A stretch of 60,207 bases of DNA, filler included, from Hausera hauseri (lineage: Eukaryota): the NCBI GenBank assembly GCA_046269625.1. It is 12 parts of 12 records of this genome, joined end to end, with 100 filler letters (N's around TTAATTAATTAA, not from the genome) between each part and the next. Parts side by side here need not be neighbours in the genome. Positions count along the whole stretch, not along the records: positions 54,539 to 60,207 come from JBJURY010209744.1; 11 more parts are not named here. One strand, written 5' to 3'. Below are positions 1-60,207 of the stretch, in pieces (the stretch's first letter is position 1; the number at the start of each line of letters is the position of its first letter). A program made the position numbers and the translations under genes. Below the pieces are notes generated by a model, which had not been told where the DNA came from, did not search any database, and saw only the letters and a list, made by a program, of their open reading frames with translations.

Positions 1-1249
1 AACAAACGATGACCGATCGATCGAATCCGATTATATTTAATTTGGACGAAATTTTTTCCCCATTTCCATAGGGTACGCCCTTTGCCGATTTTCGATGTTT
101 CTCTTGACACTTCCGTTCCGGATGGGCCGATTTCTATTCGGACACAGTTATTGGATAGCCCGCGTCTTGTGTTTTCTGTTATCCGAGTACGGGGGTCCTT
201 ATCGTGACCTTAAATCGTACTCACATATCAAATATTAGTTGATCAATCTCTTGGTGTGTCAAATGGCTTCTTAATTACTTGCGTACATTGTGAACTTTCT
301 GAAGGGGAGTCTGGTGGTTTGATAGCAAAGCTATCCAGCGCCTATTGATACAATTCATTTCTGATTTAGATTATACATTGATTCTTACATAGAGTCCAAA
401 ACAGTAAATTTTACATTAATATTTTCTTCTGTTTTAATCCAATTATCCTCATTATACGTATCATCATTATATCATACTTATACGCTATCTACTTCTGATC
501 TAAACTACCAATATTCCAATTATAATAAAAATAAATTAATCCCCGTTAGTGTTGTACTTTTACGAAACAATTAGCAAAATAAATAATACTCAAATTCATA
601 TTAGAATAGGGTACAAACCCGTTTACAAGTGTTTTATTTACTATGATTCATTAATCTTTAACAACCACCAATTTAATCTCATTCCAACGTAAATGATACT
701 AATGTAATATTATAATATTAATCCCATCAGGGCGTTTTCCATACTTCCAGTTTAAAGTTCCAAATATTGGTAACTACTGCATCATGATAATGTCACCTTT
801 ACACATCAAATTCTCTATAATGTAATCAGATACTCCAATACAATAAGCGATTCATCTTCTGATATTCGTAACGTTATCACACGTTAAAAGTTTTATATCA
901 AATTTGCATCAAATCATGTTAACCAAGGTCTTGGGGTAAAATTTATTAACGGGTCATTAGTATAGGTTTAGGAAAATCCTTGGAAAATTAATGTATATAA
1001 TATGGCATAAAAGAGTTGGCCTACCTCTACGTCAGTCATCATTGTCTGCTTATTTCTTATTACCTACCAGTTACTTACTCGAACCATGAACTCTGAATTC
1101 ATTAGTAACTTTTGTCCTAAATCGTTTTCCTCCCTCGGAGAGAACATAGTCATAATTAACCTCAATTTGATCTAAAGGTAAATAAGCTCTCTTAGATTCT
1201 TTCATTCGTTTGCAAATCGTCAATACTTATAATTTCAGTTAGGTCAATG

Positions 1250-54538: not shown

Positions 54539-56651
54539 GTATGGTGACGTTGTTCAACATTCTGTAGTCACCACAAGGCCGGTATGAACCGTCCTTCTTT
54601 GGGACCATGTGCAATAATGATGCCCACGGTGATGTGGAGCGGCGTATGATGCCAGCTTCTTCAAGATGTTGAAATTCGGCTTCCGCGGCTGCCCTCTTGA
54701 CAGGGTCAAGCTCCCTCCGGGGTTGCCAAATCGGTCGATCACATGATGTGACGAGAAAGTGTGATGCTTTCACATCTTTCTGTGTTGGTTGTGCTGAGCG
54801 CTTCAATAGGTTAGGGTATTGCGCTTGCAGCAATGGTGCAATGTCAATGGGATTTGCGATTTTTATACCCTTTACTGCGTTTATGGTTAGAGTGAATGCA
54901 GGTGGAGGTAATGGGTTGCTCCCGCTGGTAAGTTGTTGATTACGTCAATCAAATGTGAGATCGTAGTGATCTAGGAAGTTAGAACCAAGGATTGGTTGCA
55001 TGACATCGGCCAATATGAATGACCAAGAGTATTATCGGCCTTGTAGGTAAAATTGTAGGTACAGTGTACCTATGGTTGATATTCGCGTGCCATTGGCAGC
55101 TTTGAGCGATGCGTGCGACACCAGCGTAGGTCTAGCGTATGCGCTAGGTATCAGCGATAAAGCTGCACCAGTGTCGATTAAAAAATCGAGTTGTTTTAAA
55201 ATTTCGGAGTGTAGTGGCTCCGCCTCGAGGGTGAAAATAGCGCAACAATGTGTTCGCTATTTGTATACGGTAGTTGTGGTGATTGGATTTCCAATCGACG
55301 TGCAATGGGTCGTCGGGGCCCATTTAGTTTTTTGATGGCTTGTGAAATTTGCAGGCGGATCGACAGACTTTTGCATCTGGACCGAAATGGTTGTGATAAA
55401 TGCAAGTGTCTTTCATTTTTATGTTTGCTGATGGCTTGTCGAATTGACAACCATGGTAAAATTTGTTGGCGGATTCGCCAAATCGAGTGTGAAAATGGCC
55501 TATTTTGGAAAATTTGCCTTTCTTTTGCTTGGGAGATTGGCGCCGAAATTGCGGTTTGTCTCTGGCTGGCGGATTCTTGTGCGTTTTATGTGCCTGCAAT
55601 GCGGCAATGATAGTGTCCAGCTGATATTGCTGGGTCCTTGTGACGGAATGGATATTTTCCGTCAGTGCGGATTCTACGGTGCCTTTAGTGCACTCGTATA
55701 TTTTGTCGGCTTTTGATACCATATCGTCTAAAGTGGTATCGGGCGGTAATAGCACCAATGCCGCTTGAATTTTATTGGGCAAACTACTTAGGAAGTAGCG
55801 CCGTAGTATGTGCTGGTTGGTATAGGGTCCTACTCAGCATTGCTCAAATCTGAGCGTAACTTGTGAAGCAGAGCAGACTGTTTCATATTCCATGTCTGTC
55901 GCATGGTGAAGACTAAGTTCAACTGGTCCTGTTGGGATGACAGATGTGCTTTGCATATAGCTGCTTTGATTTTGTCGAACGGTTTTTCATCTGACAGTAG
56001 TGTGTCCAGATCCGTTATGACTGCAAGCTTTGTTGGCTGCAGGTATTGAATGAGTGTTAAGGCGTTGTTTAGTTGGCCGGTGATGCTGCATTAAGTATTC
56101 CTTGTTTCAAACACATGGAACCACTTCAATGGCGTTCCGTCCTAACCTATGAAGAAGGTTGGACATGCTAATTTGGGTGGTTTGGCCTGTGTTGCTGAAG
56201 CAGTTTCTAATTTTTTGTCAGGCGTGAGGTCGTCAACGCCTCCTTTTAGTTTCGGAGTCGCCAGTATGGCGGTATTGTCAACCAAAATTCTATTGATTGC
56301 ACAATTATTCTTGCGTAATAAATTTCCATTATAGGAAAATGTATGCTTGGGATACTGTTGGTTTAAAACGTCCAGCATTCCCGACATAGTTAGGGTCGAT
56401 GGGAAGCGATGAGCTTTTGTCTGACGCCAGTTTTGTACAATGAGTTGTATTTCGTTTGGCGTACAATTGGTCGATGTTGTTTCACCATGGTAAATTTTGT
56501 TGTGAATTTTAATCGACTGACGATTAGGTGAATTGCTAAGTAGCGAATTTTCGCTTGGTGTGTGTACTATTTTGGCACGGTTCGTATAATCGGGTTTGTA
56601 TTCCGATTTGACGGTGTTGACGCGTGTGTTAGTGCTAGAATATATTGGCAC
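54539..56651 (-). mobile_element. Decayed Ty3/gypsy element: UBL-GG (about 56238-56453), gag, protease, RT start
   Basis: CPTFF..TPLKWFHVFE; MVSKADKIYE; duplicated knuckle-like FHTRFG..C and CIYHNHFGPDAKVC; FLIDTGAALSLIP; ILGSNFL; [30 protein letters not shown]. Confidence 0.92.
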
Positions 56652-57111
56652 TTGTTCGATATCACGCGTTGTAATTTTCTGGTTTCAATTGCTTTTGGTG
56701 ATGCAACTGTCAGTGGGTATTACGTGATCATGTTTGTTGATGCACGAATGTGTGACCGGATTAATTTCGACGGCACTTGTGTGAATTTGAGCTTGATTGC
56801 TATCAGTGGCTGTGTGAAGTGTTTGAGCCGGATTTATTTCAACGGCTGCGTTTGTGTTATAGGGCGTGAATGCGGTAACCGCTGCCACCATTTTAGAAGT
56901 TTTTACTTTATTAGAATCCCGAACTCTATCCAAAAACACAGTAATAAAAAAACAACAACAAAAAATGAATGTGAGAAAACGATAAAACAAGACCGCATGA
57001 GTCACAACGTTTATTTGTACGACAATTACCGCCCGCCGAGGCGTACGATTCGTCCGTACTGGATAGGGACGGTTCCACTCTAAGACGTCGACGAGGTGGA
57101 ACCGGCTGGTC

Positions 57112-57753
57112 TTAAGAGCCGGAGCTGTACGCCCTTACCCGCCGTGATTCGGAGATTCTTTGGTTCGGAATCAGCTGACTCTCGGAAGGAACCAGTGACT
57201 CGAACATCCAATCTGCCGCCGCCATCAGTCTTATAAAGACTGGTACGAAGACGGAGGAGTCGAACAGCCGTCGGCTGTCTCCGTCGACGTAGAATCTTCG
57301 GAGATGTCGGTGAGGGAGGCAATACGGATCGCCGTCGTACAACCCGGTGAGGTGCCGTACAAAGCGGCTTCGTTGCAAGAGCTCTCGCATCATCATATAA
57401 TCGGAATATGAACAGCACGGAGCTTGGCGGCTTCTCTGACGATTGGCTTGCTGTGACGTGTGGCTCCGATCTTCGGAACGGGCTTGTTTCGTCGAGGCGA
57501 CGCGGCGGTCGTTGATATTTCCTCGTTCGTCGAGTGTTGGTTGGGGTATCTTTGGGATACGATACCCCGGAGTCGGAGATGCCGTCATTCCGCCAAGGGT
57601 GGTGTTTGCTTGATTCGTTGCATCTGCCGGGATGGCCTCGGAATCTTTCCTGGCGATCGGTTCGCCTGGTTTGGCTACCCTGCATGTTGATATTTGTTCC
57701 TTGCCGATTTGTTTGGTTGATTCTGTCATGTTTTTAGTCGTCGTTCTGTTCAT
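57112..57753 (-). CDS. Unknown GC-rich ORF upstream of the UBL-gag frame (possible extra 5' ORF of the element)
   Basis: 213-aa open frame on the same strand as the element, with an overlapping 201-aa alternative frame; no recognised domain. Confidence 0.35.
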   Translation of the reverse strand: MNRTTTKNMTESTKQIGKEQISTCRVAKPGEPIARKDSEAIPADATNQANTTLGGMTASPTPGYRIPKIPQPTLDERGNINDRRVASTKQARSEDRSHTSQQANRQRSRQAPCCSYSDYMMMRELLQRSRFVRHLTGLYDGDPYCLPHRHLRRFYVDGDSRRLFDSSVFVPVFIRLMAAADWMFESLVPSESQLIPNQRISESRRVRAYSSGS

Positions 57754-58199
57754 TTCCTTTTTTGAATGCTTGTCTTTTTCTTTTTGAATAATCTGTGCAA
57801 TCCTTAATCTGTGGATTTAAACAAACGGATTAAATCCACAGATCTTGATTGTTAATTTTTTATTTCTATAAGTGCTGGTTACTTCGGCACTTGTGATCCT
57901 AGTTTTTAGGTGGATGAATCCGTGATTTATTTTGATTTTATTATTTTTTCTTTTTTTAGCCAGAAATTTAAATTGTTATTTGAAATAAAATTTCACGGAA
58001 ATAATTTTTATTTCGTGGTTTTTGTATTTTTAATTTAGTATTTTTTTGCACGGTGGAATCTTACATCGAATTTCCGGTATTTCCAATATGGTTGATTAGC
58101 GCTCGGGACAGGGTGCATTCGAATACAAACACCGTGTAGTATATCAATGTGCAGTTAGAATTTAAATTTATTGATTAGTTATTGATTAATATCAATCGG

Positions 58200-59260
58200 A
58201 AATGCAAATTGGCTATATATTTAACATGTTTTTCAAGTATCAAGGAAGAAAAATTCGATTCATCATTGACCGGGGACAGATAGGAAATCGACTATGTCGA
58301 ACTCGAATATGTACTCGAAAATTCTACATTCGAATATTTTCGAGTTCGAATATTGAAGTTCGAACTATTCTAAAAGTCTAACAGCGGAAATCGATTCCTC
58401 GTATTCTAAAACCCTCATGTACATAAAATTATTCCATGAAAATTTATTATATAGGCATAAAATCAATATTTCGAATTAAGCAAAATGTGCACTTGAAGCG
58501 CAGTGAAGCGGAAATCGATAAATCTAATAGCGGAGCTGGATAGGAAGTCATGTATGTCAAATCGGAATATGGCATCAGGTATAGGAAATCGAGCTTACAA
58601 ATCGATTACTTGGCTATTCGAACTCGAAAACTCGGTCAAGCATGCATTATTCGAAGAATCTAATGACGGCATTCGATTTCCCATAGTCGAAAACTTATAT
58701 AACAATCAAGAAAAGTGCGGTGCAGTGCTGTGCAGTGTATAAAAACAAGGTTTTTCAAATATGCTAAAAGTTCTTGTTAAATGCAAAGTCATTTTTATAT
58801 TGTTTAAGCAATAGAGGTTATTTTGAAGGTGAAGCACACTGAAATCGGCAAATCTTTAAGCATACGTGGATAGGAAAGCATATGTGGAGAATCCGAATCT
58901 GGTGTCAGATGATCGAAAACATTTTTCGAACTCGAAGAAATATCGAATTGAACTCGAATATTCGGTGAAGCGTGCATTATTCGAAAAACCAGGTAGCTTT
59001 AGTCGATTTCCCATAGTCTAAAACCGAATATGGTGCCGCCATATATTTAAGTCATTTGATGCATTAAAACAAGCGCATGATGTTAATATGAAATGGCATA
59101 ATTACGTGTCAAGTTTATGCATTTGATGCATTAAAACAAGTGTACATTATGTTGACAATATGCCCAATTTACCCCACCATTAAAATTATTTCCTTACATG
59201 TGTTTTGTTTTACTGCATCAAAATTATTTTCCATACATGGGTTTTTGTTTTGCTGCATCA
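58200..59260 (+). repeat. TCGA-rich region with internal direct duplications upstream of the second pPolB copy
   Basis: About 58490-58700 duplicated at about 58830-59030; catttgatgcattaaaacaag twice; aaaattattt..tacatg..ttttg.ttt..ctgcatc twice; homologous to 10280-10410. Confidence 0.65.
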
Positions 59261-59328
59261 ATTATCAAAATTAGGCAGTGCACGCTGACATAGCCATATT
59301 TTTCATTATTTCCAATTCACTTCCGCGA

Positions 59329-60207
59329 ATGGTAAGTTTTTCTCCTATTTGTGTTCATCAAATAATTGCTTTGTTTTACATGTGTCAACTTTACAAAGAA
59401 TGCTTCGCTCCAATCCATTTCCGGAAACCTGCCATAGTACTATGATTAAATACTATGGCCACATGTTCAACAGAATCCAATATTATATATGCCATACATG
59501 TGAGGTAGTGTGTAGGACAGTTTACGAGGAATTCTACAATGTGCATAAACAGCACTTGATTTCCTTCGTCAAATCGAAAAAACAAATATTCTATAACAAG
59601 ATGCCAGCAACGTCTATTGTGTCAAAAGAAAACCAGAGGTGCAGTTCATATATGTATTGCACATGTGCAATACATAGCCCCGAGAATTGTCACAATACCA
59701 TCAGGAGCTATTATGGCCACAAATACAATAGGATCCTCTATTATATTTGCCCAGGATGAGACTGTATCCGATGGACAATACATACAGTTCTATGAAGATC
59801 ACAAGCATCATCTGACTGACTTTGCATCAAAGTCCAAGAAGATCATATTTAATGAGCATAGACCATTTGCACAGTCCGCAGTACAGTCAGCAGTACAGCC
59901 CGCAGTACAGCCCGCAAGAGTAAAACGCCCATCAGGTCCATCTGCTGCCTCAGACTCAACAGGTGTAGCAGCTCCATCAAAAAGCCAAAGACATCGGCTA
60001 GTTGATGCTGCTGCATTAAAGAAAGAAGTCCGCAAATATCATTGATGCAGCTGGGCAAAGAAACATCAAGGAGTTCCTGGAATATGCAAAGGAAGAAACA
60101 GAGGGGATCCTCCAGGACAATATGACTGAACTCAAGGCCCTTAAGGTTAATATGAAACTTGAGGCCACATACGTCAATGTCGATGCTGAAGAATCAAATA
60201 GGGCCTT
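59329..60207 (+). pseudogene. N-terminus of a second Polinton-type pPolB gene (paralog of 10617-11600), truncated by window end
   Basis: FYEDHKHHL vs FYDDHKAHL; ETEGILQDNMTELKALKVNMKLEATY..EESNRA vs ETAGILQDNLIELRAIKINLLLEATF..EESNRA. ATG followed by GTAAGT donor at 59329-59337. Confidence 0.8.

Follow-up and report, generated by a model that had tools for sequence, protein, structure and literature searches.

The window analysed here is a stretch of 60,207 nucleotides (filler included) of Hausera hauseri DNA, made up of 12 joined parts from assembly GCA_046269625.1. This account concerns the part at positions 54539-60207 (record JBJURY010209744.1), hereafter called the segment, the minus strand of which carries the 5' part of a long terminal repeat (LTR)-type retroelement that includes gag, a retropepsin and the start of the reverse transcriptase (RT). 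Within gag there is a stretch of 72 amino acids (aa), ending in K-L-K-G-G, that is predicted to be a ubiquitin-like (UBL) domain of the beta-grasp fold. The features of the element are given below, where P0001 denotes an intact Gag protein that is described after the list.

55324-56891, minus strand: degenerate gag gene, from the ATG at 56891 to the stop at 55324-55326, with stop-free pieces that are colinear with P0001 129-648

56454-56891, minus strand: Gag N-terminal leader of ~146 aa, aligned to P0001 129-271

56238-56453, minus strand: predicted ubiquitin-like (beta-grasp) domain of 72 aa, based on an AlphaFold2 (AF2) model, Foldseek, VIA, weak Pfam matches and the ESM Atlas

56238-56252, minus strand: K-L-K-G-G tail, codons read directly, with a proposed cut after the second Gly (codon 56238-56240)

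56166-56237, minus strand: linker of 24 aa from the GG to the Gag core, its first 7 residues variable and the remainder conserved

55833-56165, minus strand: Gag core of the DUF7041 type, which begins CPTFF...PLKWFHVFE and contains the stops 56142-56144 and 56091-56093

55327-55833, minus strand: Gag C-terminal part with a basic stretch and two Cys/His-rich motifs, aligned to P0001 485-648

55035-55256, minus strand: retropepsin-type aspartic protease (Pfam gag-asp_proteas), with DTGA at 55164-55175, read directly

54540-54944, minus strand: protease-RT link and the first ~45 aa of the reverse transcriptase, from the match to Ty3 RT 4ol8

There are only two matches, P0001 and P0002, to the uninterrupted 180-aa minus-strand piece 56145-56684 (residues 78-149 of which are the 72-aa domain) in an exhaustive HMMER scan of 1.84 billion representative proteins. 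P0001 is a protein of 648 aa from a European Nucleotide Archive assembly, with 64% identity that extends through all 180 residues (E = 3e-59). This shows that the 72-aa stretch is real coding sequence and not a chance open frame. It represents an intact Gag, and every gag piece of the window copy aligns colinearly to its residues 129-648. Because the similarity begins exactly at a shared Met (MVAA...), with none upstream, the start of gag is placed at the ATG at 56891. The first 128 residues of P0001, which were placed by the gene-caller, have no counterpart in the upstream frame of the window. At the other end, the gag stop at 55324-55326 coincides with the C-terminal end of P0001. No relatives beyond P0001 were found in protein searches with the P0001 leader plus UBL, the P0001 Gag core or the 180-aa window piece as queries, nor in metagenome scans or a viral-contig scan. 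P0002 (6460 aa, E = 6.5e-24) was rejected as a spurious relative, as it is an AHNAK-like protein whose 25 repeats give scores of -2 to 6 bits apiece against residues 115-179. Its near-identical repeats sum a few bits each, so that whole-sequence E-values mislead on giant repeat proteins.

Translation of 56238-56453 bears out the 72-aa stretch ending in LKGG that an earlier note on this DNA had described. It reads EIQLIVQNW...FSYNGNLL...ATPKLKGG, with LKGG at 56238-56249. The same note had placed a Gag N-terminal motif about 20 aa further on in the same frame. CPTFF does follow in frame, 24 aa after the second Gly, but PLKWFHVFE is reached only past the in-frame stop 56142-56144. A further proposal, that the UBL is fused directly in front of Gag, has to be given up, since the similarity to P0001 starts at the ATG at 56891. 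Judging from the aligned sequences, the domain is internal to gag, located ~146 residues from the N-terminus and ahead of the Gag core. The GTG at 56651, formerly taken as the start of the open reading frame (ORF), is a purely mechanical boundary, and the former ORF end at 56142 is one of the in-frame gag stops of the window copy.

The precursor thus delimited has the order of a polar leader without predicted structure, the UBL ending in KLKGG, the linker, a DUF7041-type core and a Cys/His-rich tail. The leader is rich in Ala, Thr and Asn and carries 12-aa repeats of an AVEINPA type followed by a polar stretch. It is 61% identical to P0001 across the 77 residues just before the domain, and the part that was modelled (56454-56684) has a predicted local distance difference test score (pLDDT) of 30-40 and almost no secondary structure. 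There are two to three copies of the 12-aa motif AVEINPA(Q/T)TL.T in the leader (56700-56870, minus strand), and they are found in both the window copy and P0001. The Gag core is more identical to P0001 than the domain is. It matches Pfam DUF7041 with E = 1.1e-4 in P0001 380-451 and E = 0.048 in the window piece, both under the gathering score.

The element is of the Ty3/gypsy type as far as its sequence matches indicate, because the RT start matches Ty3 RT best and the protease matches gag-asp_proteas; a Ty3-like RT comes after a DTGA retropepsin, which comes after gag. The best solved-structure match of the RT start is Ty3 RT 4ol8 (E = 6.7e-5) and the next is Ty3 Gag-Pol 7q5b, for a stretch of only ~45 aa that is truncated by the edge of the segment. 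The Pfam gag-asp_proteas match of the protease has E = 0.0019 and is under the cut-off. Membership of the BEL/Pao class was considered and is ruled out, as Ty3 RT is the best RT match and the protease matches gag-asp_proteas and not a Pao peptidase model. There is no LTR pair in the segment, whose element part ends within RT, and no tRNA-like feature was found in a tRNA scan of the segment. The Rfam, tRNA and tandem-repeat scans of the segment gave nothing relevant to the UBL finding.

The visible part of pol is interrupted by three stops, at 55257-55259, 55032-55034 and 54945-54947, the first two of which bound the protease. The gag gene of the window copy is broken by in-frame stops at 56685-56687, 56142-56144 and 56091-56093 as well as by a frameshift near 55833, and its C-terminal Gag part is shifted into another frame. 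The protease frame is open already from 55412 and overlaps the last ~29 gag codons (window 55327-55412, minus strand), and in the window copy it is +1 relative to the C-terminal gag part. Such an offset would fit Ty3-like +1 frameshifting, with the qualification that the indel near 55833 makes the original frame relation uncertain.

A beta-grasp fold, which the earlier note had proposed to look for by structure prediction, is indeed predicted for the domain. The AF2 model of the domain (m121d1068cbf5) covers 79 aa (56235-56471), was built with P0001 as the second alignment row, and has a pLDDT of 67 and a predicted template modelling score (pTM) of 0.55. Its elements are strands at 8-13 and 18-23, a helix at 29-39, a strand at 43-47, a bridge at 50-51, a helix at 57-64 and a strand at 68-73. 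This order of strand, strand, helix, strand, strand, helix, strand is the order of ubiquitin, and the beta-grasp arrangement is present in the predicted structure.

Structure comparison with this model leads consistently to the same superfamily. Among the best 50 Foldseek matches listed from the PDB, all 50 are ubiquitin, ubiquilin, BAG6, SUMO, ISG15 or tagged fusions thereof, with template modelling (TM) scores of 0.58-0.68, E-values of 9e-4 to 9e-3 and alignments of 71-83 columns. A VIA-align run made without Foldseek against 48,161 representative chains gave a best 50 that are likewise all beta-grasp proteins (Z 6.5-8.0, ~70 of the 79 residues aligned), comprising PB1, UBL, UBX, SUMO, FAT10, Hub1 and ubiquitin. 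In BFVD, the matches to the domain model are viral ubiquitins, namely the ubiquitin inserts of bovine viral diarrhoea virus (BVDV), giant-virus ubiquitins and baculovirus v-ubi, and there is no retroelement protein among them. The identity of the domain to ubiquitin in structural alignments is ~10-13%, and its YNG[N/K][L/I]L is located where ubiquitin has FAGKQL.

Methods that start from sequence give fainter signals. The sole Pfam family that touches the domain in the window copy is ThiS (E = 0.14), and the domain of P0001 is touched by ThiS (E = 0.26) and by the yeast Sde2 ubiquitin domain, Sde2_N_Ubi (E = 8.7); both families are, we take it, members of the Pfam ubiquitin clan. The ESM Atlas neighbours of P0001 268-346 carry PF00240 or Rad60-SLD, with scores of 0.87-0.90 that are under the tool's trust level, and the whole 180-aa piece gave no usable match there. 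An NCBIfam scan gave nothing relevant. A single-sequence model of the 180-aa piece has a pLDDT of 40, and its elements run strand, strand, helix, strand, strand, strand. Sequence matches in the PDB to lectin repeats, a proteasome subunit and BilD E1 were set aside as chance.

Taken on the predicted structure, it is probable that the 72-aa stretch adopts a ubiquitin-like beta-grasp fold. The domain is classed, from the model, only under the structural superfamily, because membership of named sequence families was tested and no match reached the level that they call for. Given its presence in two copies with 64% identity to each other, it appears to be an old and diverged standing part of the gag of this family and not a fresh capture.

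The tail of the domain sits where the C-terminus of a ubiquitin-like modifier would be. The final strand of the model reaches residue 73, and the GG occupies residues 77-78. The VIA alignments pair model residues 8..77 with ubiquitin 1..75 and model residues 7..78 with SUMO1 21..97, and because of these ranges the GG falls on ubiquitin G75-G76 and SUMO1 G96-G97. The K-L-K-G-G sequence follows the R-L-R-G-G pattern of ubiquitin (basic-Leu-basic-Gly-Gly), unlike the tails of SUMO (TGG) or Atg8.

Conservation of the GG, another point that the earlier note had proposed to check, holds in P0001, the sole intact relative found (n = 2 sequences). The domain is 62% identical between the window copy and P0001. 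All eight residues of ATPKLKGG are identical in the two, and only one of the next seven is (1/7); past these variable residues, conservation resumes in the linker and the Gag core. Such a sharp edge of identity at the GG would be as expected of a functional domain end or a cleavage site, for a pattern that was noticed post hoc in two sequences. The residue after the GG is Val in the window copy and Thr in P0001, and it is Pro in neither of these two sequences. Under the N-degron rules, Val and Thr are stabilising N-terminal residues.

These features suggest a scheme for the processing of Gag in active copies of the element. A host ubiquitin or UBL C-terminal hydrolase would cut the Gag precursor after the second Gly, with no need for the protease that the element encodes. 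Two products would result, a leader-UBL fragment of ~218 aa and a Gag core that starts with Val or Thr. Cleavage by a host protease after the GG is a tentative proposal to which we would give slightly less than an even chance. The statement as a whole, that there is a real UBL beta-grasp domain in the gag of a rare Ty3/gypsy-type LTR family and that a host hydrolase cuts after its GG, is quite possible while falling somewhat short of probable. A bolder form, in which a Ty3/gypsy lineage has made a UBL with a working RLRGG-like tail permanent in gag and relies on host deubiquitinases for the first processing cut, we consider rather unlikely.

There are several observations that weigh against this scheme. 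With gag broken by three in-frame stops and one frameshift, and pol by three stops, the window copy is dead and unable to make Gag protein. The evidence for the family consists of two sequences, this dead copy and P0001, which makes for a thin conservation test, and conservation of the GG alone is weak evidence when the two are ~62% identical throughout the domain. The position that corresponds to Ile44 of ubiquitin is Ser (by eye, from the motif alignment of FSYNGNLL with IFAGKQL), and the usual ubiquitin recognition patch therefore appears not to be kept. The fold call rests on one moderately confident model from a two-row alignment, and a Z of 7-8 is in the range that VIA's own notes call common. 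With the model of the longer 180-aa piece, Foldseek found nothing significant, only scattered UBL and PB1 rows. The curated Pfam thresholds are well above the scores obtained, which are 13.2 bits against 22.5 for ThiS and 7.3 against 26.4 for Sde2_N_Ubi_yeast. No match to PF00240 was found in Pfam scans of the window piece or P0001, and no ubiquitin-like chain was found in PDB sequence searches with the 180-aa piece, the domain or a two-row profile.

Three other explanations have to be set against cleavage by a host hydrolase. The beta-grasp domain might remain in Gag as an interaction module, either for docking to the proteasome or ubiquitin receptors, as do the UBLs of ubiquilin, Rad23 and Ddi1, or for PB1-like multimerisation that aids Gag assembly, in which case the GG would be an inherited relic. 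The best VIA matches are in fact PB1 domains (Z 8.0, 7.7 and 7.7; rmsd, the root-mean-square deviation, 2.3 A), the UBLs of ubiquilin, BAG6 and Rad23 are within 1 Z unit of them, and the leading Foldseek matches are the ubiquilin and BAG6 UBLs, both of which are uncleaved. The internal location of the domain, which is not N-terminal, and the non-hydrophobic residue at the Ile44-matching position also suit an integral module. So does the finding that the Ty3/gypsy-derived Gag proteins PEG10 and RTL8 are partners of the UBL protein UBQLN2 (PMC12772957, PMC7873701). However, uncleaved UBLs and PB1 domains normally lack a basic-Leu-basic-Gly-Gly sequence at the modifier terminus, and the drop from 8/8 to 1/7 identity exactly at the GG fits a functional domain end. 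The PB1 form of the idea is further disfavoured by the sequence, in which neither an acidic OPCA-type cluster nor a strand-1 lysine is visible, and by the lack of a Pfam PB1 match. An uncleaved module of this kind is a credible explanation, although on balance an unlikely one.

It is also conceivable that there is no true UBL, and that the region is a fast-evolving, lineage-specific extension of the Gag N-terminus for which AlphaFold settles on the commonest small alpha/beta fold, with a GG that occurs by chance. The absence of a significant sequence match to any UBL family would then be expected, as would the pLDDT of only 67 from a two-row alignment, the unconfident longer single-sequence model with its lack of significant matches, and the lower conservation of the domain (~62% identity) than of the Gag core. 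We regard this as improbable, given that Foldseek and VIA on the AF2 model, Pfam matches that are confined to the ubiquitin clan and the language-model neighbours converge on one superfamily, and that YNG[NK][LI]L and [KR]L[KR]GG are located at the FAGKQL and RLRGG positions of ubiquitin. Finally, the aspartic protease that the element encodes might split the leader and UBL from the Gag core in the course of ordinary maturation, so that the GG has no cleavage role. LTR-element Gag precursors are normally processed in this way, the element encodes a retropepsin with DTGA, and a variable 7-aa stretch is located right after the domain. There is, however, no resemblance to a known retropepsin site at the GG, although such sites are poorly defined, and the conserved ubiquitin-type tail would be left unexplained. 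This last explanation seems to us very improbable.

The proposed cleavage after the GG would have parallels among known systems. Ubiquitin-ribosomal fusions and polyubiquitin share with the Gag domain the beta-grasp fold (predicted here), a basic-Leu-basic-Gly-Gly tail and an in-frame downstream protein, which in the fusions is released by deubiquitinases. The Gag domain differs from them in its low identity to ubiquitin, its lack of a PF00240 match, its N-terminal leader and its location on a mobile element. Another counterpart is SDE2, whose strongly diverged UBL ends in GG and is cut off by host ubiquitin-specific proteases (USPs) (PMC13572447, PMC5131917, PMC6486553), with removal by USP5 in human cells (PMC13572447). 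In both cases a diverged UBL with a GG stands ahead of a working protein part, and the host deubiquitinase of SDE2 frees that part with a defined N-terminus. The yeast Sde2 UBL model is also one of only two Pfam families that touch the Gag domain, at an E-value (8.7) from which no membership is claimed. In contrast to the retrotransposon domain behind its ~146-aa leader, SDE2 is a cellular gene with the UBL at the very N-terminus, and its new N-terminus is Lys, compared with the Val or Thr proposed for Gag.

Internal ubiquitin-fold units are also known from the polyproteins of cytopathogenic pestiviruses (BVDV and classical swine fever virus, CSFV), in which host hydrolases cut at the C-terminus of a ubiquitin insert and thereby free the downstream protein (PMC8310069, PMC13517609). 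The likeness lies in an internal ubiquitin-fold unit in a virus-like polyprotein, and BVDV fragments are among the best BFVD matches of the domain. The pestivirus inserts are, however, recent captures of host ubiquitin mRNA that are near-identical to ubiquitin, whereas the Gag domain is highly diverged and a standing part of gag. Ddi1 and Ddi2 contain a UBL, a helical domain and a retropepsin-like protease, and Ddi1 is a cellular shuttle protein whose UBL is uncleaved. This order resembles that of UBL, Gag core and protease in the element. The likeness is one of architecture only, and the analysis found no link in sequence. Among structural matches, the UBLs of ubiquilin, BAG6 and Rad23 and the PB1 domains are the best, but they are unprocessed at a GG, and the defining motifs of PB1 are not seen in the Gag domain.

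The prevailing view is that LTR elements and retroviruses have their Gag precursors processed by the aspartic protease that they encode and by no other. The ubiquitin that Gag is known to encounter is a modification added by the host and not an encoded domain. No prior description of a ubiquitin-like domain encoded in a retrotransposon gag was found in the open-access full-text literature. The comparison with known systems suggests that an established device, in which a polyprotein contains a ubiquitin-fold unit that ends in a GG tail, occurs here in a new host, the Gag of an LTR retrotransposon. An encoded domain of this kind would add a new way in which retroelements use the host ubiquitin system, and it is relevant to the ways in which ubiquitin-like modules are acquired and retained by viruses and mobile elements, and to the origin of UBL-plus-retropepsin proteins such as Ddi1. 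If cleavage after the GG takes place, the products would be a Gag core with a defined N-terminus and an equal amount of a leader-UBL protein with a free GG end. The latter might have an activity of its own, such as docking to ubiquitin receptors, and might even be conjugated. The element would then be the first known case of the ubiquitin-fusion route among retroelements, and it might be a living counterpart to Ddi1 with its layout of UBL, helical domain and retropepsin.

Upstream of the gag ATG there is a GC-richer block at 57083-57798 (minus strand), with a GC content of 0.50 compared with 0.33 further out. It contains two long open frames (217 and 228 codons) that overlap each other, one of which includes an ATG-started ORF of 213 aa at 57112-57753. 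These frames match no Pfam family and do not resemble the upstream part of P0001. The block may represent an LTR with leader sequence or an extra upstream ORF. Exactly where it changes to AT-rich DNA there is a near-perfect palindrome (57806-57845), composed of a ATCTGTGGATTTAA arm, a 10-nt centre and a TTAAATCCACAGAT arm. The outer boundary of the element, or that of its LTR, may lie here.

Beyond this point, the AT-rich stretch 58190-59030 contains several inverted and direct repeats around TTCGAACTCGAA and ATAGGAAATCGA motifs (pairs I2, I5 and I15), and it looks like a miniature inverted-repeat transposable element (MITE) or a satellite-like repeat. On the plus strand, 59289-60042 carries two tandem Cys/His/Tyr-rich units of ~95 aa, with the pattern YYGH.[FY]NRI.YYIC ... 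HK.HL..F..KSKK.IF, that extend across two frames and have no Pfam match. They may be the remains of a decayed gene or of another mobile element. These units are followed by a 12-nt tandem repeat at 59871-59916, after which an open frame (60020-60205) runs off the end of the segment.

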